From Klebsormidium nitens (lineage: Eukaryota > Plantae > Klebsormidiophyceae): a stretch of DNA of 47,838 nucleotides. Both the position numbers and the translations under genes were made by a program. Below the pieces are notes generated by a model. The model worked only from the letters and a program-made list of their open reading frames with translations, did no database searches and had not been told where the DNA came from. The DNA is taken from assembly GCA_000708835.1 (NCBI GenBank), contig DF237592.1, positions 1 through 47,838 of the forward strand. Reading direction: 5' to 3'. Of this stretch, positions 2,920 to 35,002 are shown one piece after another; the stretch's first letter is position 1; each line of letters opens with the position of its first letter.

Positions 2920-3420
2920 CGATCTTATGGAAACTTTTCGAACGAGATGTGGCGGCTCGCACCATGCGTTCCAAAGTTGTCCCCGCCTGGACAGTCCTGT
3001 CTCGCTAAACATTCAGCTCCAAACCACACGTAACGTATGAGCCTCATCTGGACGTCAGCAGACCATTCATTCCCACTCATTTTTCCTTCTGTCAATAGTC
3101 TGTACAAAGGTAACAGCTACTAGATGCTACAAAACTGACCGCCCGTGTCCGCTAATGCGTCTATGTTAGCTTTCCCTTCTTCAGAGAATCAGCGGCGTCA
3201 GTTCGTAGCCTAACGGGTCCCCTCTACTGACCTCTGAGAAGCTTGCGATCCTTTGATTGTGGCCGCTGTCGAAAAGAAAAGCGAGGATTCGTTTACAGAA
3301 TACATCAGCTTTCAAACAACAAGGCGATGCCACAGAAGGTAAATGCTGCTGCAAATGTTAGGGTTCATGACCAGCGTAAGGTTTCAAAGCTGCAATCATG
3401 CTGCCAACCAAGGCATGTGG
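2920..3420. repeat. Paralogous 3' region (last intron, terminal exon, 3' UTR), homologous to ~11780-12310
   Basis: Shared blocks include cctcatctggacgtcagcagacc, gtcccctctactga, gagaagcttgc and atgctgccaacca in the same order in both places. Confidence 0.8.
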
Positions 3421-3477
3421 CATATGAATTAGCACGCACATCTTAGACGAGCCGTTCCATATCGTAAGAGATCAAAG

Positions 3478-4686
3478 TCAGGCAGACTGCACAGAGCTTG
3501 TCGCCGGAACGGCACCTGTCAAGTACCTTTTTTGGCACAGAATAAAGGATCTGGATGCAAAAAGAACGCAGAATTTCTTCGAAGTGATTCTCACCGAGCT
3601 GCGCTCGGTCAGTGGTCGCCCCATTCGCGCCCGCCCCGCTCAAGCCCGGGATGCTCGCTTGCACCGCCCGGTTGTTGGCCTGGCTGCCGTTGGCGCGCTT
3701 AACACCCGCCTGATTGGCCGCTGTAGGAAAGGAAGCCAGAAGAAATTGCTGAGGCCGTTGTCAAAGCATCAAACCCGTTCCTAGCTCTTGCTTTCACCGG
3801 AAACGGTTGGCAATAAAGGTAAACCGTATGGGACCAAGAGGATGGAACCGGGATGGAAACATGCACGAAAAAAAAGGAGAGGGGTGACTGAGAACGGCCG
3901 CCGAAGTGGAGCACAATAATTACTCGCGAAGGAAATTGAAACTTAAAAACGGCAAGGAGCACTCAATTCAGGCAGACTGCACAGAGCTTGTCGCCGGAAT
4001 GGCACCTGTCAAGTACCATTTTTGGCACAGAATTTAAAGGATCTGGATGCAAAAAGAACGCAGAAATTTCTTCGAAGTGGTTCTCACCGAGCTGCGCTCG
4101 GTCAGTGGTCGCCCCATTCGCGCCCTTGGTCGCCCCGCTCGAGCCCGGGATGCTCGCTTGCACCGCCCGGTTGTTGGCCTGGCTGCCGTTGGCGCGCTTA
4201 ACACCCGCCCGATCCGCCGCTGTAGGAAAGCAAGCCAGAAGACTTTGCTGAGGCCGTTGTCAAAGCATCAAACCCGTTCCTAGCTCTTGCTTTCACCGGA
4301 AACGGTTGGCAAAAAAGGTAAACCGTATGGGACCAAGAGGATGGAACCGGGATGGAAAAATGCACGGAAAAAAAGGAGAGGGGTGACTGAGAACGGCCGC
4401 CGAATTGGAGCACAATATTTACTCGCGAAGAAAATTGAAACTTAAGAACGGCAAGGAGCACTCAATTCAGGCAGACTGCACAGAGCTTGTCGCCGGAACG
4501 GCACCTGTCAAGTACCATTTTTGGCACAGAATCTAAAGGATCTGGATGCAAAAAGAAGGCAGAAATTTCTTCGAAGTGGTTCTCACCGAGCTGCGCTCGG
4601 TCAGTGGTCGCCCCATTCGCGCCCTTGGTCGCCCCGCTCGAGCCCGGGGTGCTCGCTTGCACCGCCCGGTTGTTGGCCAGGCTGCC
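3478..4686. repeat. Near-identical tandem repeat of an exon+intron unit (~490-499 bp, about 2.4 copies)
   Basis: Units start with tcaggcagactgcacagagc at 3478, 3968 and 4467. The ORF track shows duplicated ORFs offset by 499 (3699/4198, 3963/4462). Confidence 0.92.
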
Positions 4687-5870
4687 CCGGACGCCCTTGC
4701 TCGCCTGGTTGAGCGCTGCACATACGGAAGCAAGGCCACATCACGGCTGTGTGATCCAGGCCATTAGTTGATCCACTTTCCACCGGACGAAAGCAACGGA
4801 AAAGAGCGATAAGCCAACAGACAATGAGATCTCAAAGAAGAACCGAAAGCCAAAGGCACTACAGCAACCGCAGGTGTACATTTGGGGAAACGTCCTTCGA
4901 CATCTAGCTGTTACTGACAGGGCCTGCATGAAACCGTGCAGGAGGTTTGGGCCCAGTAGACGGATCCGATCCGTTATTTCGGCCACGACTCTCACCTGTT
5001 GCGGCCAGCAGAATGGCGGCGTTCTTGGCTGCCTGGACGGAGGTCGCCTCCACGTGGTTGTTGTTCGGGTTCACGGCTGCTCAGGCACAGCAGGACGCGA
5101 CAAGATAACCATCAGCACATGGCGCCTGGAAACCCGATTCAGTCGGGAGAAAGCACCACGGATCTCGATGAAGTGAAAGAGCTAGGGAGGCTCCCAAGTT
5201 CTCCGATTGTTTTTTTCGCTTGACGGCACAAAGAGGAGTTTCCTCATGTACTGACCGACCAGCATCACGAACCCGCAAAGAAAAGTATGGATCAATGCTT
5301 CAGCATGTCCACCATGTATGCTTAGTTGTTGCGGATTCTTGTCAGCAACTGTTGTCGAACGGGAAGCAATGGACGAAGACAGCCGGTGGAGAATCTCAGT
5401 CTCGACACCTCTCACCCATCTACGCTTGCTTGATGGTCGGCCCCTCTGCGCCCTGGATGCTAGCCTGCTCCTCCTGGTGCTTGGGCTGGCTGCCCCGGAC
5501 GCCCTTGCCCGCCTGGTTGAGCGCTGCACGCACGGAAGCAAGGCCACATCAAGGCTGTGCGATCCAGGCCATACGATAATCCACTTTCCACCGAACGAAA
5601 GCAAATGGAAAAGAGCGATAAGCCAACAAACAATGTGTTCTTAAGGAAGAACCAAAAGCCAAATGCAGTACAGCAAACGCAGGTATACATTTGGGGAAAC
5701 GTCCTTCGGCATCTAGCTGTTGCTGACAGGGCCTGCATGAAACCGTGCAGGAGGTTTGGGCCCAGTAGACGGATCCGATCCGTTATTTCGGCCACGACTC
5801 TCACCTGCCGAGGCCTGCAGAATGGCGGCGTTCTTGGCTGCCTGGATGGAAGCAGACTCTCCCTGGCCAT
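4680..5870. repeat. Direct duplication of a two-exon unit (offset ~808 bp)
   Basis: Sequence from 4680 to ~5060 matches 5488 to ~5870, including the intron (cggaagcaaggccacatc...ggatccgatccgttatttcggccacgactctcac). Confidence 0.85.
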
Positions 5871-6605
5871 TCAACTGGTCTTTTTTTTTGGATCATCGGC
5901 TGCACAACAGGGCGCGATTTCGAGACGTTTGCATCGGCGCGTGCAAATTTGCAAACCTTTTCGAAAACGCACAGGACGAATGCCATAAAGCTACGAGAGT
6001 ACAGTCAGTAACCAAGCTATAAGAGTACAGTCAGTAACCTACAAAGAATCTACAGGTATGCAGCAAGATAATTTCTGCTTGCAGACAACATAGCACGAGA
6101 ACTCCTGAGCAGGATTTTATCAGTGAGAGGCGGGATTTGAAAATGAATCAAGAAACTCTCTTTGTATCAAAACGTTCTTCGCTCCGTGCATGGATCGCTA
6201 TTTCGTTTTGAGACCCGGAGACATTGTAAGGAAACGGACGAAAGACAGCCAGGTGAGCCTCCTATGCTGGTTTATCCTTACCGAGCTTTGCTTGGTCAAT
6301 GTTCGCTTCCTGGATGCCCGCTCGCTCCTGGGGGTTGGTCTGGCTGCCCCGGACGCCGTTGCCGGCCTCGTTGAGCGCTGCACAGACGGAGGGGAGCACA
6401 GATCAGCTGCTTGGCATGTACAGAACTTCATGTCGTCATGATTCAGGTGTGTACATTTGGTCAGTCCGACAGGACCGGAAAGAAGAGGGAGTGCTTTGGC
6501 AAGCAGGCAACGAGATTTCAATGGTGAAAAAAAAGGCTTCAAGCATTCTGCCGAAGCAAAGAGAATTCTCTTGTGACCTCCTAAAAGCAAATTACGACGG
6601 ACGAG

Positions 6606-8078
6606 TTAGGGTTCCAATAAGGTGATTGGGCAAGAAAGTTGAAGGCAACCTTCTGGGGCTGCCTGCAGGTTGGAGCCTTCCAAGACGCCAAAAGACGAGG
6701 GATCCTGGAGCAGAGGCAGCTCCCAAACTCGTGCTGCACAAAAAACACGTTATGTCAGTACACATATAGCACAAAGCATTCACCGCTTCCAGAGTAAATG
6801 CCAACAGAAGATTGAAGTACACAAACTAAAACAATTGCACAACTAGGACCATTTTGGAGAATAGCAGCAGCAATGATGCAGATACAGATAGATACCCAAG
6901 GCTCCTGAAGGCCAAACAAAAAGTAAACACAGAGTTGTTGGGACACGCAGGATGAGCAAAGCAACTCACGCATATTGGGGACAAAGCAGATGTACTTCAC
7001 AGCGCAGCCACCACCCGCCCTGTTGATCATGTCATCTAACTTTTCCTTCGTCCCTTTTCCTTGCAGCAATGCAAAAAAGGCCCTGTCCCCGGTGACGAAT
7101 ACACGGTGCTTCTTCACCAGTTCCGGTACATGTTCGCACGCAGTCAGGAAGGTTTGTAGAGAGGACATAAGCTGCACACGAAGGCCGCACGTTGCATAGA
7201 GGTATTGATGGACTGAATTGGAATCTAGACAGGTCCAACAGTGGCTGAACCGATGTTGCAAGAGCTTGCTCTGCAGCGCTCTTTATAATTGCCAGTCTTA
7301 TATCCCATCTCATTTTGGAAAAGCTTGGAACACTTCCAGGCAGTTTATCCAACTCAGCAGACATTATCCACGAATCCAGGTCTCTGACCTGGGGTCCTGT
7401 GGGGAGGCTATTGATCTCCTTGATCAGCTCCTCATCCCGTGAGACGATTCCGGGAGCTGGCCAGCACTTTAGCCGGGTTTTCACGCTGGAGTAGGCCGCA
7501 TAGGTCTGATGATCTTGGTACAACTGACCGGCTGCACTGTCTGGAGCGGCGCTGGAGAAAGAAACAAGTCCAAGTGAGCTGGAACCTGAAAGCTTGGCAA
7601 AGGATGACGAGAAACACACGAGGTTGAAGCTGTGACAATTGGATGTGCAGAGTCAGCAATATACATTCGTTTGAACCTCTTTTGTGTCTGTATTAAGAAG
7701 CAGTGTGGAGACTTACTTCTGCATGAAGTCTACAGCCGCAGCATCGCACACAAAGTGCACCTTGGGGATTTTGGCACGCCTCTCAGGTGGCAGCTCACTG
7801 CATGCAGAAAAAATCCATCAGATTTCTTTAAAAGCACGCGGTTCAACTGTAATAGCAGATAACCCCACTCCAGTCAGGCAACCTTACTTGCTCAAAGAAC
7901 TCTATGCAGAGAGCAAGGCACCGGCAGAGAATCATAGATGCTCACAAAAGCAACAATAAAGTGAACTCCCTAAGAGACAAAAAGCTTACCCTTCTTCCTG
8001 CTTCCTTTTTAATGCGCGAGTAACGAAGACAACCTGCTCTGCACGCCTCGTTTCGAACCAAGAACTGTGCTCCATCAT
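6606..8078 (-). CDS. Divergent PIN-like domain protein (~266 aa)
   Basis: Frame-consistent model: exons 8078-7990, 7797-7717, 7551-7251, 7171-6970, 6733-6606. PIN-like motifs: VHFVCDAAAV, MRWDIRLAI, RVFVTGDRAFF. The donor at 7250 (GTTCAG) is weak and the family call rests on motif resemblance only. Confidence 0.42.
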
Positions 8079-8261
8079 GTTTGTAGTCTGCAGAGGTCAG
8101 ACCAAATGGGGGTCAGCTTCACCGCAGAGTGCTCTGGCAAAAAAAGAGATGTATGGTGGCAATAAAACTTGCACCTTATGGAATGAAACCTTTGACATTG
8201 TTAAGAGGTAATCAAGCCTTCATTTGAGGACCATGGGGTGGCATTTTGTATGCTGCCTAAC

Positions 8262-9042
8262 TCAGTAGGGCAGATGCAGATCCCAGGGGGTCACAATGTC
8301 CATGGTGTCTAAACCATGCTGTCCAAAGACTTCTTCCATCTGCTCTCGAACTTGGAAGTCGTTCAATGCGAGTCTTTCAAAGCCCCGATCAGCCGTGAAG
8401 AATAGGGGAACCAACTCCAGGATTGGAATTGCTACTTGTGAAGATTGACACCTCAGGTGCAAGCACGCCTCTACATAAATCTTTAGATCCTTCAGATCTG
8501 TCCCCTGCAGTAGGCGGATGAGGAGGGGGAAGGTCAGTCAGGCTGCAAGGTCTATGCTCCTTAGGTTGCTCAAAATGGAGCACCAATGCATAGAAATTTT
8601 TCTCTGAAGTCATGCAGCTGCGAATTTGTGTAAACTGCGCCAAAAGGCAATTAAGAAGTTCAATCCTTACCCAATCCTCAAAATTCTCTTCGACAGCGTC
8701 AACCTTGGCAAAAAGGTCTTCCACAACAGAATCCACCACTTGCTCGTCGTATCCCTCCACAGCAGGGATGAAGTCGTCCGGAATCCCCCAGGGAAATCCT
8801 GGTGTCCTTGAGAACTCCCAGACAACTGTGGGAGGGATAAAGACTTGGAGACGGTCTGCAGCTCTCCAGGCAAATTCTTGCAAGATTTGGCGGTTTCCTC
8901 TTTCTGTCAAGACTTTTGAAACCACGTTTGTGTCCAAGTATAGGCGCTGGTTGTCGGGACCAATCTCCTCAGTGTCTACAAAGCAATCCCCTGCAGCGTC
9001 AAAGCTGACGAAAGGCCTGACAAAACTGCCGGGGTTCGACAT
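8262..9042 (-). CDS. PIN-domain (VapC-like) putative ribonuclease (~204 aa; possible N-terminal extension to ~9333)
   Basis: Exons 9042-8671 and 8504-8262 (GTAAGG...CTGCAG intron, phase 0). All four PIN acidic motifs in order: LYLDTNVV, VFIPPTVVWE, TDLKDLKIYVEA, LFFTADRGF. Confidence 0.72.
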
Positions 9043-12097: not shown

Positions 12098-15000
12098 CTA
12101 CTGATTTACGAGAAGCTTGCGGGATCCCTTGATGGTCGCAGCTGTCGGGAGAAATGAAAAGGTCAGTTGAGAAAACAGAGATTGAACGGCGCCTTGTAAG
12201 GCAATCGCAAATGCCAGTGAGAATGGAAGGACTTCACAGTATCTAGAGGTCGTGAACATTGCGAGGTCTCAAAGCTGCGCTTATGCTGCCAACCAGGGTA
12301 CGTGGCACACGCTTCATTGATTACATCTCACAAGAGTCGTTTTGTAACGAGGACGCTTTGCTCGACTCTTCTCAGCGCTCTGAACATGCATAAAAAGCAC
12401 GATTCAACATGGAGAGGTGCTGCCAAAAGCGGAAGCCGCAAACCAGAGAACACGCCTTTCCGACGGCGCCCTGAGAACCTCACCCAGATAAGCGTCGGTA
12501 TTGTAGCCTCCGAAGGCCTGCAGCCGCCTTCCACCGTTCGAGTTGGACGCTGCACAGCAATCGCGAAGCATCAGAACAAGACAAGCCACGAAGTGCCGTA
12601 CTGACAAGCGCACTTTTGCTCAAAAAAGACGGTTACATCGAGGACGCCAGGTTTTCTAACCATGGAGGACACCCCGAAGTAACGGACGTCCGCGAACCAT
12701 ATGGTCTTTGCTGCAACAAGGTCAATACAGAGTCGCCCAACACGGTTTTCTGATGATCACACGAGCTGCAGAAGCTCGGGGAATCAAAGATTCATCGGAC
12801 AATTGCAAGGCATTAGGTGACATATCTGGGCTACAGGGTACGCGCTGCTTCATCTGTACTGCTCTCAACGCACAGCTTCGAAAATATAGGAACCGTGAAT
12901 AACAGAAAACGATGACGACCAACGTTTGACAGAGGCAGACAAGTCTTGGAAGATGTCCCTTCCAAGCGACAGACATGAATGATGGGCGGCTTCATAAAAA
13001 GCGGTGCCGATTGAATCTTCCTTGGAAGAGTGCAACGAAAGCTGATTATGCGACCAATCTGCAAACCCAGTCAAGCTCACCGGCCTGAGCTTGGTCGATG
13101 GTCGCCCCCTTCGAGCCCTGGATGCTCGCCTGCTCCTCCTGGTTGTTGGTCTGGCTGCCTTTGGCGTGCTTACCACCCGCCTGATTGGCCGCTGCACGAA
13201 CGCCAGCAAGAGACTTCGCTGAGACCGTTGTGGAAGCTTCGACTCCGTTCTGAGCTTTGCTCCCACCGGAAAGGTTGACGAGAATGAAAGTGGACGTGGC
13301 AAAGAGGACGCATTCGGGAAGAGAACTTGAGAACGACAGGGAATAACAGCGGAGCCGATAAGGGCCCCCAAACTGGGGCGAATTTTGCAAGAGACTCCGT
13401 AGACAAATAGCATTAGGCTGGAGGCAGAGTTCACAAGTTTTCGGCTGGAACGGCTTCGACTCAAGCGAGCACGATGTTACTCAAAAATGATTGGCACAGA
13501 GCCATTCTTTGCACGGAATACAGACTGTCATGCTATAGATGCAGAAAGAAGGTGCAAAGACCTCCAAGAGTTCCAAGCGGCCCTCACCGAGCTGTGCTTG
13601 GCCGATGGCCGCCTGTTTCGCGCCCTGGATGCTCGCCTGCTCCGCCTGGTTGTTGGTCTGGCTGCCCCGGGCGCCTTTGCCGCCCGCCTGGTTGAGCGCT
13701 GCACGGACGGAAGGGAGCACAGTCAGCAGCTTGATATATACAGTATTCTGAATGCCTTTTTCCGGTGAGTCTCAAGAAGACGAAAACAATGAAAGTGATT
13801 TACAGAGCAAGTGGAAGCAAATGTATGGTGAGGAGGAAAAAGGGGCTAAGACGTCTGTTGAAGCGGAAGGTCTGTGCGCGAATGCAAAAACGCAAAAGGA
13901 AACGAAACGGAGAAGGCCAGAATGTTTTACACCATGTCAGCGAGGTTGTTGTAAGTGTGTTATGGGTTGCCTGCAAATGTGAACTGGTAATGTTATGAAC
14001 TCGATGAAATGTTGACCGCACTTCTCACCTGCCTGGGCTTGCATAATGGCCGCGTTGGTTGCTGCCTGGATAGAGGCAGCCTCCCCCTGGTTGTTGACCT
14101 GGTCTTTCTTCGAGTTCACGGCTGCAAAAGCAGGGCGCGCCGGCAACAAGCACGTGATCGTCCGCAAATCGATAAGTACAAGCATAAATCTCGATAGAGC
14201 GAAGTGAGAAAACGGACCTACAAACGATCTCAATGATTACTCAACAGCGTGTTGTTTTCTTGGCAAAATTGACTGCAAGAGTTGACACCTGAGGGTTCTG
14301 GCAAGGAGGATCGGCAATCAGCACAGATACGAAAGTGCGCATGCGGAGCAAATCTCTCATCAATCTCCTTCATCAGCAGCTTCTGACATTGTAGCATTCT
14401 TAATTCGGATAAACCAGAAACAATGGCGAAAGGCAGCCGTTGACTTTCATCGACCCCAGTCTATCTTACCGAGCTGTGCTTGGCCGATTGTCGCCCCCTT
14501 TGCGCCCTGGATGCTCGCCTGCTCCGCCTGGTTGTTGGTCTGGCTGCCCAGAACGCCCTTGCCCGCCTGGTTGGCCGCTGCAAAGGCGCAAGCAAGGCTG
14601 CATCGGGGCTTCAGTTCTGTGCTAGCAATGTACACGTTCAACACTCCATCGTACCAGAGGGCAAGAAAGTACGGGAAGCCAGCGAACGACGCTTCCGGGA
14701 GCGACGATTCCGGGAGTCGACTGAAAGGGCAGGATATATACACAGGAAATGTGCAGCAACCGCAAAGGGACGGATCGAGCGGATTTATCAGACAATTAGC
14801 AGTTGCTGACAGGGCCAGCGTGCAATGCAAAAGTACGTGTGCAACAATATCGAAGGATTCGGTGACTGTAGAACAGTCCTTTCTGCATTATGGGGTCGTT
14901 TCCTACCTGCCTGGGCCTGCAGAATGGCGGCGTTCTTGGCTGCCTGGATGGAGGCAGCCTCTGCTTGGTTGTTCACCTGGTTGTTGAGCTGGTTCTTCTT

Positions 15001-18000
15001 AGAATTCACGGCTGCACAGAGAAGTAGGACTTTGGCTCGTTGGTGCGGCGCGTGCAAGTTGCAACCAGTCCAGGGACAATCACGATGAAGCCACGAAGTT
15101 TTTTTCGGGCTATGAAATGATCTTTAACTACTCTGCTTACGTTTCTTCCGGTCAAAAAATGAACAAGCAAGTATCCCCACAACAAGGACATTACAAGGAG
15201 TATCAAAACCCGGAGGGTTTTAGAGGCGGCATCCTGTGACTCAATGCTTCGTCGTGAAGTCGGATACTTGTCAGCGTTGTCGTCGAAGAGGAAAGGAATG
15301 AAGATTGATAGCGGATGAATTTTAATCTCGACGCGTCTTACCGAGCTGCCCTTGGCCGATGGTCGCCCCCTTCGCGCCCTGGATGCTCGCTTGCTCCGCC
15401 TGGTTATTGGTCTGGCTGCCCGAGACGCCCTTGCCCGCCTGGTTGAGCGCTGCACGCACGGAAGCAAAGCACAGAGTCAGGTATTCGTTGGGCAGATTAT
15501 GCACCGGACCTAGCGTATGGGTAAGAGCGGCAAGCCAGCAGAGCGAGCGATAATGTTGGGAATCTACAGAAAGAGAGGATTGGACGGAAAGCAGTCCAGC
15601 GACCGCAGGTGTACGAACCGAGAACCTTTTTGTCGACGTCTGGCAGTCGCTTCTGGCACTTGCTTCACGACCAGCGAATCCTGCGTGACTTATGCGTGCC
15701 AATGCAGATTCTTGCATGAGAACTGGCCCGGTAAAAAGATGAAGTCTCCAATTTCGGCCACGATTCTCACCTGCCTGAGCCTGCAGAATGGCAGCGTTCT
15801 TGGCTGCCTGGATGGAGGCGGCCTCCGCCTGGTTGTTCACCTGGTCTCTTTTCGAATTCACGGCTGCACACAGGGCGCGACACAGTGGGAAGTCAGCAGT
15901 AAGCACGTGTCAATGTTTTAAAGCACGAAGTCACAAGTGTGTTCAAGGAAATTTTATGAGAGTAGCGCCGAAAAAGACCGCTGCAGTGCGGCCACGTCAG
16001 AGATTGTATGAACGAGCATCAAGATTCGGCGAAAGAATGGAAACCGCTCGTGCCTGCTAACTTATTGCTACTTTCTCAAGCATTGGTAGCATCTGATTCA
16101 TACAGAAGTCTTTGTCAAAGACGCGAAGAAGAAGAAGGGACGGGCGGAAGCCAGACGGTGAAGATCCCGACCCCAGTTAAACTTACCGAGCTGCGCTTGG
16201 TCGATGGTCGCCCCCTTCGCGCCCTGGATGCTCGCCTGCTCCGCCTGGTTGTTGGTCTGGCTGCCCGGGAAGCCATGACCGCCCGCCTGGTTGGCCGCTG
16301 CACGCAAGTAAAGCAAGGCCCGGTTGGTGAGCGCGAACCATTCTTGTCCCGCACTCTGATCGTTCCTCTTCGTGACTTTGTGCGAAACTTTACGACTGGA
16401 CAGTATCGAAGCGGGTGGCGAATCGGAACGGATCGTAGCGAAACGGAACGAAGCTTTATAGACTGGTCACGAGAAAGGGATGCTCATTTTACAAAGAGCG
16501 AAATACTCTCAGTCCACAGGCTTCTGAAGTAAAGCTTACGGACGCTCAAAGCGTGTCACGATTCAACCTCACGGTCCTGCGGATAAAACAAAAGGAAAAC
16601 GATCATCAGAACCGGTATGTCGACGGATGTGAGTGATTCGCACCTTCCTGGGCCTGCAGGATGGCGGCGTTTACTGCGGCCTGGATGGACCCGGACTCTG
16701 CCTGGTTGTTGGTCTGCGCCTTCTTGCCCTTCAGGTTGGCGGCTGCAAGGTTTGAAAAAGGACAGCCGTCATTTCTGCAACGAATCTCCGCAAGTCTATG
16801 CAGAGAATCGGCAAATTGCATCTCTTTGCCAGGTTGCGTCCGCGGATCTATTTCTGATGCAGAAAAAGAAGAAATGATGCGGAGAACCGTTCTCAGTTAC
16901 AGCGCGATGCATCTCTCGAAGCTTGATATGTAGTGCAAGTCTTGAAGCAAACCCTTAAGTTTCTCACCGCTCTGGCCTTGAGCGACCGTCGAACCGGGGG
17001 ATCCCTGGATGACTCCCTGGGCACCCTGGTTGTTTGTCTGGGACCCACCCTTGCCGCCCGCCGCATTGAGAGCTGCAAGAGCATCGCAGAGAAAACTTCT
17101 CATTTGTGGGCTACGGATATGAATAATCAGTAGGTCATGCAGAAGAATGCAGTCCTTTGGACTAAACTTACGAAGCTTGCAGCATTCGAAAGGCCCTAAA
17201 ATTCCCGTTCATTATGCTGGATACGAAGAACCAGTGCGTCGACAAAGTCTTCGTTTTGCTTCCTTCTTCCGCAAAATACCTTTCTTCTTCTGAGACAGCC
17301 CAAGAAAAGTTTCTAGGATCGACCTAGCTCTGTGTCTTACCTGCCTGGGCCTGGAGAACGGCGGAGTCCTTAGACCCCTGGATGATTGCTTGCTCCGCCT
17401 GGTTGTTGGTCTGAGATCCTGCTCCATTCGCTTGGTTCGCGCCTGCAAGAGAAGCGACCCGGTTCTGAATAAGTCAATAGCGCCCCTGATGATCTCAGGA
17501 GTGTCAATGGAAGCGAGACTTACTACGCAACGATAGATGGATCGGAATCCTTTCTAACCTGCGCTGAGGCAGAGCAACACAGGCTCTGACCACTCAAAAC
17601 GCTTTCGTCGGTACCTGACCAATCTCAGGATAATCTCCAGAAAACGAAGTAATCGGAGATTCATGCGCAAGGGTTTTGACGACCACATATGATGGAAACA
17701 AAAGGAAGGACACGTGGCACAAGAAAAGCCGCACCCGTCTGTCCCTGGGCGACCGTCGCGCCCTTGCCTCCCTGGATAATGGCCTGCTCCGCCTGGTTGT
17801 TGGTCTGGCTGCCGGTGTTGCCTTTCAGTTGGTTCAGTGCTGAAAAACAAAAAGAAGAGTATCGGGACAAAGGTTGCATGCAGGTGCGGAGCTTTCGTTC
17901 TCGAGACCAGGCGCTTTGGTGAGTGGCAGCGGGACTCTTCAAAAATGAATTGCCAAGAGCCGCAATCCTGTTCTTGAAGACCAGCATTTTTTGGGAGGTT

Positions 18001-19813
18001 GCCAGAGAAAGGCGAGGTCAGCATGCAGAGAGTTCGGCAAGCGTTGAATTAGATGAACAACCGAGAGCGGACTCTCCGCCGAACCGGAGCAAGTTCCTCA
18101 GCGCATCAAGGTGACGTGGGATGTCTCACCGGCCTGCGCTTGCGCGATCGCCGCATTGCCGTCTTGAACAATGGCCTGCGCCCCCTGGTTGTTCACCTGA
18201 TCCCGCATGTTGGAAGCTGCAGCCAACCGACACGGCTCATCACACCCAAGAAATACTGCCTCAGGACGGGGCCGCTATCCAAATATAAGCATCAACAAGT
18301 TTGCTTAATTGGAGCAGATTTTCTTGTCAGGTCATGAGAAGTGGAGACAAGCCTTCTCACCGACTTGGCCTTGCGCTACGGAAGCGGGTCCCGACGAGTC
18401 CTGGATGATCCCCTGAGCCCCCTGGTTGTTGGTCTGAGAACCGGAGCCTTTGTGGCCGGAACCCTGGGGGCCCATCTGGTTCAAGGCTGCAAAACAGAAA
18501 GATCGCAACCGTTTCAGACCTACAAATATCCCTCACCCGAAAAGCATAGCGCAAATGTTGGTGCTCATATTCATGAGGTTGCGCGGACCAGCGAATGAGT
18601 GGTTCATAAGACAGGGACAAGCCACGAAAGAGAATGAGGACAAAAGAGACGGTGAGTGTTTCTCAGACGTAGTCAAATCTAGTCAACGACTCGGCTCTCC
18701 AGAAAGGGAGCGCTCGTGCTGGTCCCTTCTCACCCGCCTGGGCCTGTTCGATGCTGGCGGTGTTGGACCCTTGAATAAGCGCCTGAAGGGCCTGATTATT
18801 CGTCTGAGAGCCTTTGTTTCCGAAGCCCATCTGGTTGAGAGCTGCACAAAGACAGAAACTTCAGTCGTACGAAAGAAGAAAGGTTTTCCAGGCAGAAAAC
18901 AAGCAAGGGAAGGAAGACAGTTTCCCACTCAAGTGGCCGTCGCCGCCAGACGTAGGTGGAATCTGCTTGAAGTATAAACTGCTGATCAGCATCGGAGGAC
19001 TCAATTCTTAAAACTGCATAACAGATTTAGCCAGGACTCAGTACCCTCAATGGTGTCTCAAGCTCACCTGTCTGTGCCTGGTCAATGTGTCCGTTCTTGA
19101 CCAGTTGGAGGAGCGCCAAAGCATCCTGGTTGTTGACTTGACCCCCGCTGGTGCTGCCATCGGCGAGACACTAGAAAAGAAAGGACAAGTTGTCCTGTCA
19201 TGTCCGGGATCTTCAGACAGAATAATGGTAGGCAGGTGTGCCAGGATTTCGGGCTTCGACAAAGAGAAGCAATTCTGTGTTCATCTGCGAGTTCTTTTAG
19301 AAGCATTGAAGTGGGAGACGGTTGGGCTTTATGGTCGAGCGAGAAAATCAGAAAGAAGTTAGCGACCAAGAAGAACTGAGATAAATGTCGTCACGAGGAG
19401 GCAGTTGCAATTGTGCTCAAATAGGGACATCATTCAGAAGATCCCTCGTTTGAAGATCTTAATTGTAGACACATGAAATCACATGATTCCGGTTGGGAAA
19501 GGCGTGCCTAGCATCGACTCAATCCTTACGAATGCAGTACCTTAGAATCCAGTGACAGGACGCAGAGAGACAACCAGCACCAGCATCTCACAGAAAATGG
19601 TGCAATTTTTCCACTCAATCTGCACGGAGACGGAAGTGCTTTTTGTAGAACGTCCAGATTCAGCAGTAATTCGAAGCTGAAACGAAGGAAACGAAGAGGG
19701 ATCGATTAGAAGTAGGAAAACCGCCTTTTGCAAAATGGAGGGGAACTTACCCGAGTCGTCAGGGTGGAGAGCAGCAGCAGCCCGAACAGAGCGAGGAAGA
19801 CCTTTTCAGCCAT
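12098..19813 (-). CDS. Secreted Gln/Asn/Gly/Ala-rich tandem-repeat protein, one repeat per exon (19 exons, 615 aa); candidate beta-solenoid/functional amyloid
   Basis: Exons: 19813-19751 (MAEKVFLALFGLLLLSTLTTR), 19170-19068, 18841-18734, 18486-18361, 18216-18130, 17839-17735, 17442-17341, 17072-16968, 16742-16644, 16297-16187, 15863-15771, 15449-15342, 15011-14907, 14577-14470, 14121-14029, 13698-13588, 13191-13081, 12549-12484, 12141-12098 (TAG). All have GT..AG boundaries and total 1848 nt with no internal stop. Exons 3-18 are symmetric phase 1. Confidence 0.88.
13081..19170 (-). repeat. Array of 16 homologous 87-126 nt repeat exons (consensus QTNNQAEQASIQG-x-K-G-ATI-x-QAQ-x-A-x-N)
   Basis: The recurring plus-strand core cctggatg...gcctggttgtt is visible in each unit, flanked by ctcac/cttac/cgcac/cctac (reverse-strand donors) and ctgca/ctgaa/ctag (reverse-strand acceptors). 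Confidence 0.93.
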
Positions 19814-32048: not shown

Positions 32049-33431
32049 GCCTGGAGAAGACGGACTAGAGAGCACAAGGTGGGCGGGACGAGCTTGTTCG
32101 AGCGGTGACCAGATGATAGCACAATTGAAAGAACAAAGCAGGGCCGGCGGACAAAAAACCTCTCAACTTGACATGCACCGGCAAAGTGTAAGGGTGTTCG
32201 AACCTGAGCATGGCTTTAGGCTGCAACCTGCAGTCATTTATGAAAGTTGGGATTTGCTTCTTGTCATTTGTGAAGATTCAACAGATTCAAACGTGACTCT
32301 GCCCGTTTGAGGCGAGAAAAACTGAATCTCATTCTCCATTCGCAATGCCTGTGAAGCGAGGACCTATACATAAGATGGTAAAAGGTCTGACGTTTTTGCA
32401 ACCAATGCCATAACGAGAACCTCAACCTCAAGGAGTACGTGCTGTGGGGAGTGACAAAACAGCTAGGCTCAATCAAAGAAACGATCCCCATAAGGAAGCA
32501 CGCTACCCCCATACATGCACACCACGATAGGTGCAGGGATCACATGGTCCTAGTGGGGCCGCCATGCTTGTCACATGCGGATGGGTAGTCTCATGTCCAC
32601 TACAGCATCAATGCATTTTGAGCGATATCGACCCAGCTGCATGTCGAAACCTGCACCGCAAGATTACGTGGTGTCATTGCGATTGCATGAGATCGAGCTA
32701 TGTTTTTTGTTGAACGGCAGTCGGACCGCCCGCACATGCGCTCTAGAGCCTGCATAGCCTTTTCGACCGGTCTAACGCTAGCCAAAAACTTTTGCATGAC
32801 GAACAACGAAGCTTATTTTCCGGCTCAATTCATGAGATTCAGGCTCTCCCTTGAATCTCGCATGCCATGGTGATGTACTGGCATGGCTTGCGGGCCTACA
32901 TCGATCAATCAAGCATGCGCATCGATCAGTGTCATGGCGATTGATGTTCTTGTGAGTCGGACTGATTTCGACTTTGCACCTCCAACATTCTGCGCATTTC
33001 ATGATATTAAGAAGCACCCCACCAAAAGGTTTGGCAGTCGCTTGACACTGCAGGGCAAGCCGACTTTGCGCACGACTCGGATGCTACAATCTTGCACAGA
33101 GAGCGCGCATACCTTACTAAGGCAAGCATTTGCCAAGTCCTTCATTCGGCTTGCGAAGCAGCTCTGCTGCCCAAAGCTTTTACGTGAGTCTGGCTATGCA
33201 GCCTGTAAGCCAGCTCTTCGGTAGTATTCCAGCTTTTTAAGCACGATCCACTTTTCAAGAGATAGCGAGCTGACAGGCATGCTGTAGGGGGAACAAGATT
33301 GGAAGCCACTGGTACGAATTGCCTAGAGTGTTTTGAAGAGCGTGAGATTGTAAAGGACATTGATCCTTTTACGTGAATATATATCGGAGTGTCTCTTTTC
33401 TACAGGCTGCAAGCACGACAACCAAGGCGAG

Positions 33432-35002
33432 ATGGAGGACCAAGTCATTGATCGCGCGTCCCAACTTCTTTCCAATGATCCTAGGACCCTGCAACAAGCA
33501 CACGTAGCTCTCGAATCAACCAAGGCGAACAACCCCATTGGCCACACATTCTTCCCAAGATTGGTTCAAGAACTAGCAGTCTACCAGCAAGGGGCTGTTG
33601 TGAAGAAGTTGATGAGTCAGGCGCTTGGCCAGAGCAGCCCAACAAGGGCTGAAACTTCGGAAAGCGTCAACGATGCCTTCAGGCGCTCTACCATTGCAGA
33701 GAGCGGAACAGAACTTGCTCAAGCGTCCTTGTTCGCCCTCGTCAGCCTCTCTTCGAGCAAGGCCTTTGCGCTCTTCTGTCAGGACAATCTGGGGGTTAGC
33801 GAGGAGCTTCTGTGCTTCTTTTTGGAGAACCTCAAGGCTGCAAGGGCTTCTACAGCTGTTGAAGATCTTTTCAACACCGCCGACTACGGAGCGGACCGTG
33901 GCCATCTTGCGGCTGCCTGCCTTGATGGACTAATCTACCACGCGCGCGCTTCGGAGAAATTCCGTCAGCACATCCGTGGGCATGCGAGAGTGCTTCCCGC
34001 CGTCCTGTCTCTCTTCGAGGACGACACCATCAAGCAAATGAGTAATGAGGTCCTCGTAAGTGTCAGGCAAGGAGTGACAAGTCTGGTTCTGGCCCTTGCT
34101 CTTCCAAAGGACAGCCAAGAGTGGATGATTGAGCAAGGGTACCTCCGGCTCTTGGGAAGTATCTGTGGCTCCGGCATCAGAAGACGCTTTGACGATGGAG
34201 ACAAGTGTCCGGGCGGTTGTCTGTTCGTCATCCTTCGTTTGGTGGAAAATTCAGCCCTTGTTAGGAAAATGAGAGAAGCAAGAGTGCTGTCTATCTTCGA
34301 CCCTTACTCAAGATCGGTCGACTCAGCATTGCCTGGGGTTTGGCAAGTCGTCAAAGAACTGCTCGATGACAGATGTAGGATTTCCCGAGCCAAGGTGCCG
34401 AAACCTGCAATTTGGAGCCAGGCTGTCAAGCGAATGCATGATGTAGATGTGCCAACGGTCTGTTCGTGGGAAGGTTGCTCTGAGGGAGAGGACCAAGCTT
34501 CGGAACTGCTCGGCGAAATCGATCTCGAGAAGTACTTGACGGAGACGAGGAGGAAAAAGTTCAGCAGATGTGGGCGCTGCGCGGCTGCGTACTACTGCAG
34601 GTAAGCATGACCTAGTTTTGTCGAATAACTGCAAGATGTTGCAGATCTTTGTACATACACGAAAACATTCTAATACTAGTCGATCAGTACGTTACCTAGT
34701 CGAGCATCCGCTAAGCGTATGCGCGGTGGAGGCATGGCGCTTGGGACAAACAGTGACAATTTCTTGCAAGCCTTATGGAGTTCGAGGAAGTTGAACGTTT
34801 CATTGTTTTTCGGGTCCTTCTTGTGTTCTTCTTTTCAGCTCCGGGTGCGGTCCAGTCAGAGCCAGCTGCAGGAGGTGATCTCGCACGTCGATTGCTTCTG
34901 AAAAATTGATACAGTCTCTACTCTTGATGCGCCTGCAGCAAGGATCATCAGAAGCTACATTGGCCAACGCACAAGAAGCACTGCTTCAGGAATGAGTGTT
35001 AG
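33432..35002 (+). CDS. MYND-type zinc finger protein with a long helical N-terminal region (~410 aa)
   Basis: Exon 33432-34600 (AG|GTAAGC) plus exon 34939-35002 gives CSWEGC...CGRCAAAYYCSKDHQKLHWPTHKKHC, a canonical MYND pattern with an insertion after the first Cys pair. An acceptor at ~33404 suggests an upstream exon. Confidence 0.85.

Follow-up and report, generated by a model that had tools for sequence, protein, structure and literature searches.

Background

The curli subunits CsgA and CsgB are secreted, Cys-free bacterial proteins composed of imperfect tandem repeats of 19-23 amino acids, in which Gln, Asn, Gly and Ala residues are invariant and the hydrophobic positions vary, with two conserved segments linked by a turn of the Q-G-x-x-G type and with divergent terminal repeats. 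Amyloid-like adhesive fibrils have also been described in the terrestrial, subaerial green alga Prasiola linearis (Mostaert et al. 2006, 2009, via the review PMC6628237). This material is extracellular and proteinaceous, and the observations on it are biophysical only (Congo red, Raman and atomic force microscopy), with no protein identified. Silks and plant glycine-rich wall proteins offer a third point of reference, being secreted proteins with few charges in which blocks alternate with variable Gly-rich spacers; silk-type blocks, which on their own may be helical or disordered, may take on beta structure once assembled. The Q/N-rich prion-like domains of yeast Sup35 and Ure2 are cytosolic, compositionally defined and tolerant of scrambling. 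To our knowledge, no protein sequence has been attached to the Prasiola fibrils, and no gene is known for amyloid-like algal adhesives.

Klebsormidium is a streptophyte alga, from the group ancestral to land plants, and serves as a model for land adaptation; its extracellular matrix proteins are, as far as we know, poorly characterized. Here we analyze a stretch of 47,838 nucleotides from Klebsormidium nitens (GenBank assembly GCA_000708835.1, contig DF237592.1, positions 1 to 47,838), referred to in its entirety as the window. On its minus strand, at 12098-19813, lies a 19-exon gene for a protein of 615 amino acids with a predicted signal peptide and 16 repeats whose conserved residues are nearly all Gln or Asn. 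Comparison with a close relative indicates that the gene is functional. An initial annotation, made from the DNA letters, had proposed a hidden gene of a streptophyte alga encoding a candidate functional amyloid; it was correct as to the source organism.

Gene structure

Sixteen evenly spaced open stretches on the minus strand share the core Q-x-N-N-Q. When the model was rebuilt from the raw sequence, reading from 19813 to 12098, 19 exons joined into an uninterrupted 615-aa frame (CDS of 1848 nt, start ATG at 19813, stop codon at 12100-12098), identical to that first proposed. GenBank record DF237592.1 lists a 615-residue product at the same coordinates and on the same strand, and the gene is thus not hidden, as had been supposed; it was previously annotated as an uncharacterized hypothetical protein. 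From gene order on the contig, the locus tag should be KFL_006430050. We found no paper naming kfl00643_0050 or KFL_006430050, or the identifiers of the sequencing runs and metagenomes used below.

All 18 introns (144-580 nt) are of the GT-AG type, with intron 1 in phase 0 and the remaining 17 in phase 1. One signal-peptide exon is followed by 16 single-repeat exons (exons 2-17) and two tail exons. The repeat exons have common borders: a (t)gcag acceptor ends two bases ahead of the frame, and a G/gt(g/a)ag donor begins one base past it. Exon 1 (19751..19813) comprises 21 codons with the ATG and encodes the n-region MAEK and the hydrophobic core VFLALFGLLLLSTL of the putative signal peptide, whereas exon 2 (19068..19170; 91% nucleotide identity to the ortholog described below) encodes its end together with repeat 1, which is divergent and more hydrophobic than the others (...QVNNQDALALLQLVKNGHIDQAQT) and may form an N-terminal cap. 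Exons 3-10 (16187..18841; 18841-18734, 18486-18361, 18216-18130 and 17839-17735 for repeats 2-5; 17442-17341, 17072-16968, 16742-16644 and 16297-16187 for repeats 6-9) are bounded by phase 1 introns on both sides and have lengths divisible by three. In exons 11-17 (13081..15863; 15863-15771, 15449-15342, 15011-14907 and 14577-14470 for repeats 10-13; 14121-14029, 13698-13588 and 13191-13081 for repeats 14-16), a short, Ala-rich type (VNSKK...AAKNAAILQAQA) alternates with a longer type (LNQAGGKG...GAKGATIGQAQL). Exon 18 (12484..12549) is a 66-nt non-repeat tail exon with the motif GGRRLQ and most of the few aromatic residues of the protein, and exon 19 (12098..12141; 44 nt) encodes the C-terminus AATIKGSRKLLVNQ and the stop codon.

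Because exons 3-17 are divisible by three and flanked by phase 1 introns, skipping any one of them preserves the frame, and alternative splicing could yield isoforms differing in repeat number. Similarity between units within K. nitens ends ~20-30 nt beyond the exon edges. Tandem Repeats Finder, run with a maximum period of 500, detects none of the array, owing to that limit and to the diverged introns.

Ortholog and evidence of selection

Collinearity with the window, neighboring mTERF gene included, is seen in L003, a Logan assembly of SRR23617307 that bears a 14-exon ortholog encoding 441 amino acids with 11 repeats. Its exons (63, 103, 108, 132, 87, 105, 102, 105, 99, 111, 93, 108, 66 and 44 nt) match K. 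nitens exons 1-12, 18 and 19 in length save one in-frame 6-nt indel, which falls among the otherwise same-length positional orthologs of exons 3-10. Exon identity amounts to 87.5% over 1320 nt (86% at the amino-acid level), as against an intron identity of 69% of aligned columns, or 54% with gaps counted, with dozens of indels. Differences at codon positions 1/2/3 number 27/37/102, and the Nei-Gojobori estimates are dN=0.071 and dS=0.40, for a dN/dS of 0.18. All 26 splice sites are preserved in the ortholog. Both tail exons (66 and 44 nt) are retained as well, along with the frame and the position of the stop codon, bearing out the gene model where it was least secure. The 615-aa gene is, on this comparative evidence, functional and under purifying selection.

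Exons 13-17 have no counterpart in L003. A second assembly, L001 (SRR12417992), is collinear with exactly these five repeat exons, from which it follows that repeat number differs among close relatives. As a separate observation, intron 1 of the ortholog (L003 6263-6830) apparently has a GC donor (CAG/gcaagc), compared with GT in K. nitens (CGG/gtaagt).

Predicted product

The N-terminus, MAEKVFLALFGLLLLSTLTTRCLA followed by DG, resembles a signal peptide, in agreement with the initial annotation. As assessed by the -3/-1 rule only, it has a charged n-region (MAEK), the hydrophobic core cited above, of at least 10 residues, and small residues at -3/-1 (...C-L-A before D), with cleavage likely after the ...CLA encoded in exon 2. 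The ortholog keeps this exon, with T-L-A before D at the cleavage site. Homologous 21-codon first exons are found in L003 and in three members of the family from metagenomes (L002, L004 and L005), and a hydrophobic N-terminal exon thus occurs in five loci. The product is therefore predicted to enter the secretory pathway by means of a cleavable signal peptide.

The mature protein would comprise 591 amino acids (~59 kDa, pI ~9.5), with a grand average of hydropathy (GRAVY) of -0.61, and is free of Cys. The repeat region contains no Cys, Trp or Tyr and only two Phe; its composition is dominated by Ala (21%), Gln (19%), Gly (13%) and Asn (11%), with Gln+Asn at 29% and Leu at 4%. Charged residues are scarce (K+R+D+E ~11%). 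Despite 64 Asn residues there are no N-x-S/T sequons, where shuffling expects 7.3 and 0.05% of shuffles reach zero (p~0.0005, which is optimistic since the repeats are not independent). Seven near-misses of the form N-S/T-x are present. The ortholog also has none, against 5.2 expected by shuffling. This absence is compatible with a secreted protein whose Asn residues must remain unglycosylated.

The repeat unit

Each of exons 2-17 encodes one repeat of 28-41 amino acids, in which two conserved segments are joined by a short turn and separated by Gly/Lys-rich loops, an architecture that the initial annotation had described correctly, including the number of repeats and their lack of Cys and Trp. 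Seven positions are invariant across the 16 K. nitens repeats. Extending the alignment to 54 repeats drawn from five loci leaves six of them invariant (Q21, N23, N24, Q25, Q32 and Q44), with Q46 and N2 conserved at 90% or more. Column 42 is always Ile or Val, both beta-branched, and column 22 is Thr or Val in all but one of the 54. The near-invariant core is Q-T/V-N-N-Q-A-x-Q-A-x-x-Q ... I/V-x-Q-A/G-Q-x-A-x-N, and T-x-N pairs are present in every unit.

The conserved segments are fixed at 12 and ~11 residues, with indels restricted to the loop and the turn. The loop preceding Q21 varies from 0 to 15 residues and is Gly/Lys-rich in K. nitens and Gly/Phe-rich in the metagenome species. Thus, the invariant residues are Gln and Asn and the hydrophobic positions are variable (I/S/L/V), a mode of conservation that curli repeats share. 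That conserved residues should be nearly all Gln or Asn is unusual, and the pattern looks suited to regular side-chain hydrogen bonding. The first and last units are divergent and could serve as caps. No clear autocorrelation peak was seen for a half-repeat (~17 aa) periodicity.

Gene family and distribution

A search of 1.84 billion representative proteins with a repeat profile (alignment A1) returned eight matches. Seven are short single-exon open reading frame (ORF) calls on Klebsormidium-like contigs, and these contigs yielded the related loci; the eighth, P0007, is spurious. The search missed the annotated 615-aa protein itself, which a local hmmsearch scores at E=1.6e-200. Its negatives are accordingly weaker, and the absence of full-length relatives is to be read with caution. 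Combined motif and tblastn scans gave no confirmed relative in 185,579 prokaryotic genomes or in Joint Genome Institute (JGI) metagenome contigs, both with the low power of a 36-aa query.

Divergent members with 8-14 phase-1 repeat exons are found at L002, L004, L005 and L006 (JGI metagenomes 3300060285 and 3300060284). First exons among these (MAGKVFVALLGLLLMST..., MAHGKAFVASFGLLLIIS...) are homologous to the signal-peptide exon of K. nitens. The mTERF proteins encoded on two of the contigs share 89-91% identity with the K. nitens one, which implies that these contigs derive from close relatives. The GGRRLQ motif of the tail (12484-12549 in the window) is kept in the L002 and L005 paralogs (~13196 and ~10590, respectively), and AAT.[KR]GSRKLL (12098-12141 in the window) is kept in L002 (~13697). 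On sequence grounds, these basic motifs could be processing or sorting signals. Judged from these searches, the genes constitute a multigene family known so far from Klebsormidium-like genomes only. Its members evolve as exons are duplicated or lost, as in the orthologs with 16 and 11 repeats, and as the Gly-rich loops change freely.

Some metagenome variant exons (L005 6015-6161 and 8589-8741; L002 ~7502, ~8898 and ~11608) keep only the first half-unit (GGNNQAAQAILQRIAAGQ...), which is followed by an unrelated acidic segment (...VNPWTGEIIDVAAIGEE).

Fold and possible roles

The unit could fold as a beta-arch solenoid, as a helix-loop array or as an alpha/beta unit. The reading that we favor, and hold to be plausible rather than probable, is a self-associating extracellular matrix protein with stacked units, Gln/Asn ladders and Gly-rich loop spacers. 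The repeats would stack on each other within the chain, and possibly across chains, so that Gln and Asn residues repeated identically from one unit to the next would form hydrogen-bonded ladders. Small Ala, Gly and Ile residues would pack between layers, with the Gly/Lys-rich loops (Gly/Phe-rich in paralogs) acting as flexible spacers. Such an assembly would contribute fibers or sheets to the cell wall or extracellular matrix, resembling either a beta-arch solenoid or a block copolymer of the silk kind. Stacking and ladders are our best guess from the invariant Gln/Asn, the fixed segment lengths, the period of two in segment 2 and the residues allowed in columns 22 and 42. In addition, several repeats have three Gly inside the conserved segments and Pro in the turn, and paralogs carry G-S-F-F-P-G-G mid-unit; together with the beta-branched column 42, this counts against one continuous helix. 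A more specific version would make the protein the first sequence-defined counterpart of curli in a eukaryotic alga, that is, a secreted Gln/Asn-ladder beta-arch solenoid or cross-beta fiber of the wall or adhesive matrix that arose independently of bacterial amyloids and would supply a candidate gene for the amyloid-like material of subaerial algae. We consider this version unlikely; the amyloid or beta-solenoid hypothesis is neither supported nor refuted.

A number of results weigh against the favored reading. Pfam returned no match for any of the 16 repeats (E<=10) or for a two-repeat ORF (E<=1), and the repeat profile has no match among PDB sequences at E<=10. In hhalign comparisons, the 54-repeat profile gave probabilities of 1.1% against the CsgA repeats and 0.4% against mature CsgA. 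By sequence, the protein has no relation to known amyloid or beta-solenoid families. No spliced multi-repeat protein is among the profile matches from the 1.84 billion proteins, no expression, localization or biophysical data were found for the gene, and a table of genes differentially expressed under high light (PMC9121098) lists kfl00643_0090 only, the 615-aa gene being absent. Conservation is also split, in that segment 2 has a period of two over 12 consecutive positions (permutation p=0.007), with no power at 100 degrees, whereas Q25-G33 of segment 1 is conserved at i, i+3, i+4 and i+7, a period of ~3.6 (p=0.013), both tests being post hoc and based on 9-12 columns each. The statement in the initial annotation that conserved residues fall on alternate positions therefore holds for segment 2 and fails for this part of segment 1. 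Hydrophobic-moment spectra are ambiguous, with peaks near 90 and 160 degrees.

AlphaFold2 models of isolated pieces are also helical. For one repeat with the 54-row alignment, a single helix is predicted at residues 17-35 (predicted local distance difference test [pLDDT] ~70-76), with a mean pLDDT of 67. For a 173-aa read-through of exon 11, intron 11 and exon 12, the Ala-rich repeat is helical at residues 11-35 (pLDDT ~85) and the second repeat is weak. No strand appears in the models of isolated repeats. The read-through exists since intron 11 (15450-15770, minus strand, 321 nt) is stop-free in the exon frame, placing exons 11 and 12 within one 194-aa ORF (15322-15906). In that model the intron-encoded linker is helical too (pLDDT 77-89). 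Non-coding sequence is thus called helical with equal confidence, and the helix calls are uninformative; they therefore approach, without reaching, the confident helical prediction that the initial annotation had named as contradicting its proposal.

Taken at face value, the predicted helices would suit a helical or disordered hydrophilic protectant, in which N-capped (T-N-N) amphipathic Ala/Gln helices of ~20-25 residues, joined by flexible Gly loops, would form a coating on walls or membranes, or else bind water or ice as the cells dry and freeze, in the manner of late embryogenesis abundant (LEA) proteins or Ala-rich type I antifreeze proteins. Klebsormidium tolerates desiccation and freezing, the protein is hydrophilic and 21% Ala, the conserved Q25, Q28, A29 and Q32 have helical spacing, and inspection of the Ala-rich repeats places Q/N positions every 11 residues. 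Such helices, however, would have to accommodate Gly, as well as Pro and Gly-Gly mid-unit in many members, a column 42 restricted to Ile or Val, and a segment 2 that is strictly period-2. The scarcity of charges, the lack of a Pfam family and the equally confident helices for intron-encoded sequence also detract from a protectant, which we rate as somewhat unlikely. The split periodicity could instead reflect an alpha/beta solenoid serving as a binding scaffold, with a helix at Q25-Q32, a strand at A38-N2 and an Asn ladder after the strand, in the order of elements seen in ribonuclease-inhibitor-type leucine-rich repeats; its regular Gln/Asn/Thr surface would bind a periodic ligand, for instance wall polysaccharide or ice. 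A near-invariant Asn directly after the strand-like segment, the T-x-N pairs of each unit and the basic pI of 9.5 are in keeping with this arrangement. Nevertheless, there is scarcely any Leu or other large hydrophobic residue to form a core, Pfam matches neither leucine-rich nor other repeats, AlphaFold2 gives no strand and the periodicity tests on which the arrangement draws are post hoc over few columns. It is, in our estimation, decidedly unlikely.

Two further explanations were weighed. The signal peptide, the encoding of one repeat per exon, four repeats with KK or KR in their loops and a tail containing RR and RK would fit a polyprotein precursor from which cleavage at basic sites in the loops releases many copies of a ~30-residue signaling or antimicrobial peptide. 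Most loops (GGKGxxGS, GHGFPGS and the GGF type of paralogs) nevertheless lack a dibasic site, and conservation crosses the boundary between exons and repeats (Q-x-A-x-N-Q), leaving no self-contained peptide, so a precursor of this kind is very improbable. Finally, the frame might be an annotation artefact or a dead gene, a low-complexity stretch open by chance and unexpressed, as could be argued from the lack of any transcript-derived multi-repeat protein in the profile search and from the decayed copy 6 kb away (described below). That is scarcely credible given a dN/dS of 0.18 with differences biased to third positions, 26 preserved splice sites with indels confined to introns, retention of the family in at least four other loci, and the sharp contrast between the intact copy and the decayed one.

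Should the units stack into cross-beta or solenoid fibers, as our favored reading would have it, the protein would stand as a eukaryotic counterpart of curli reached by convergence. It would provide a molecular handle on amyloid-like algal adhesives and would clearly illustrate, outside animals, how duplicating symmetric phase-1 exons changes repeat number over evolution. A helical or disordered protectant, should that be its nature, would still amount to a new class of secreted stress protein.

Comparison with known families and systems

The initial annotation had recognized no family for the protein, and the empty Pfam and PDB-sequence searches bear this out, as does NCBIfam, in which none of the 54 repeats matches any model at E<=1, although the amyloid-family content of that library was not checked. 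No kinship with curli is supported. As a control, Escherichia coli CsgA matches Curlin_rpt (PF07012) at E=1.4e-27 over five stretches. The Klebsormidium repeats have no such match, the hhalign probability is ~1%, and the unit measures 28-41 rather than 19-23 amino acids; curli homology was rejected. Nor do the units conform to the curlin motif S-x5-Q-x-G-x-G-N-x-A-x3-Q, carrying Q-x-N-N-Q-x6-Q ... I-x-Q-x-Q-x-A-x-N in its place. Three other assignments fail on sequence as well. LEA or hydrophilin membership has no Pfam match, and K+R+D+E at ~11% differs from highly charged 11-mers. Ice-binding families of the DUF3494 and plant IRI types find no Pfam or PDB-sequence match. Leucine-rich repeats (LxxLxLxxN) have no Pfam match, and Leu makes up 4% of the repeat region.

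What likeness there is to curli lies in principle only. Shared features are secretion, freedom from Cys, imperfect tandem repeats with invariant Gln/Asn/Gly/Ala and variable hydrophobics, a turn of the Q-G-x-x-G type linking two conserved segments, and divergent terminal repeats. Unlike curli, the Klebsormidium gene is eukaryotic, has a unit of ~35 amino acids with a different motif, an intron per repeat and a signal peptide for the endoplasmic reticulum, and has no Csg-type secretion or nucleation partner; homology is undetectable.

The fibrils that the initial annotation cited from Prasiola are confirmed by the review. Extracellular material of this sort in a subaerial green alga could be built from a secreted repeat protein rich in Gln and Asn. 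Prasiola, however, is a chlorophyte rather than a streptophyte, and in the profile search the repeat family is seen only in Klebsormidium-like contigs. We found no paper linking Klebsormidium to amyloid.

With silks and plant glycine-rich wall proteins the protein shares Ala/Gln-rich blocks in alternation with variable Gly-rich spacers (GGKG; GGF or FFGG in paralogs), secretion, few charges and a repeat number that varies between close relatives (16 vs 11). The analogy extends to the working principle only, as there is no sequence similarity, the Klebsormidium blocks are set by invariant Gln/Asn rather than poly-Ala or GA, and each repeat is a separate exon. In the case of the Q/N-rich prion-like domains, the resemblance is one of composition (29% Gln+Asn with few charged or large hydrophobic residues). 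Unlike the prion domains, the Klebsormidium protein has residues invariant at particular positions, segments of fixed length and a signal peptide, which point to a defined repeat fold.

Decayed copy and neighboring genes

The repeat gene has a second copy, now decayed, at 3199-6381 on the minus strand, 6 kb from the intact gene, with ~7 repeat exons that have tgcag and gtgag borders and with a relic of the terminal exon. Invariant Gln/Asn residues are replaced (e.g., QANNRAVQASIPG), a TAG lies inside an exon at ~5430, and the relic of the last exon (~3199-3281) is frameshifted. No signal-peptide exon is detectable in this interval. GenBank has two models over the region, 3210-5419 and 5460-9042 (175 aa and 397 aa). 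By its sequence, the copy is probably a pseudogene.

Farther along, a pair formed by ATP-citrate lyase (ACL; minus strand) and an EamA transporter (plus strand) is syntenic between the window (36-45 kb) and L005/L006 (13-20 kb). In L005/L006, a repeat-family gene adjoins ACL on the other strand, and the corresponding position in K. nitens is occupied by a MYND-finger gene. From this synteny, members of the family appear to have moved or been lost. Also in the window, the product of a 414-aa ORF (33360-34604) matches hypothetical protein KFL_006430080 [Klebsormidium nitens] with 100% identity.

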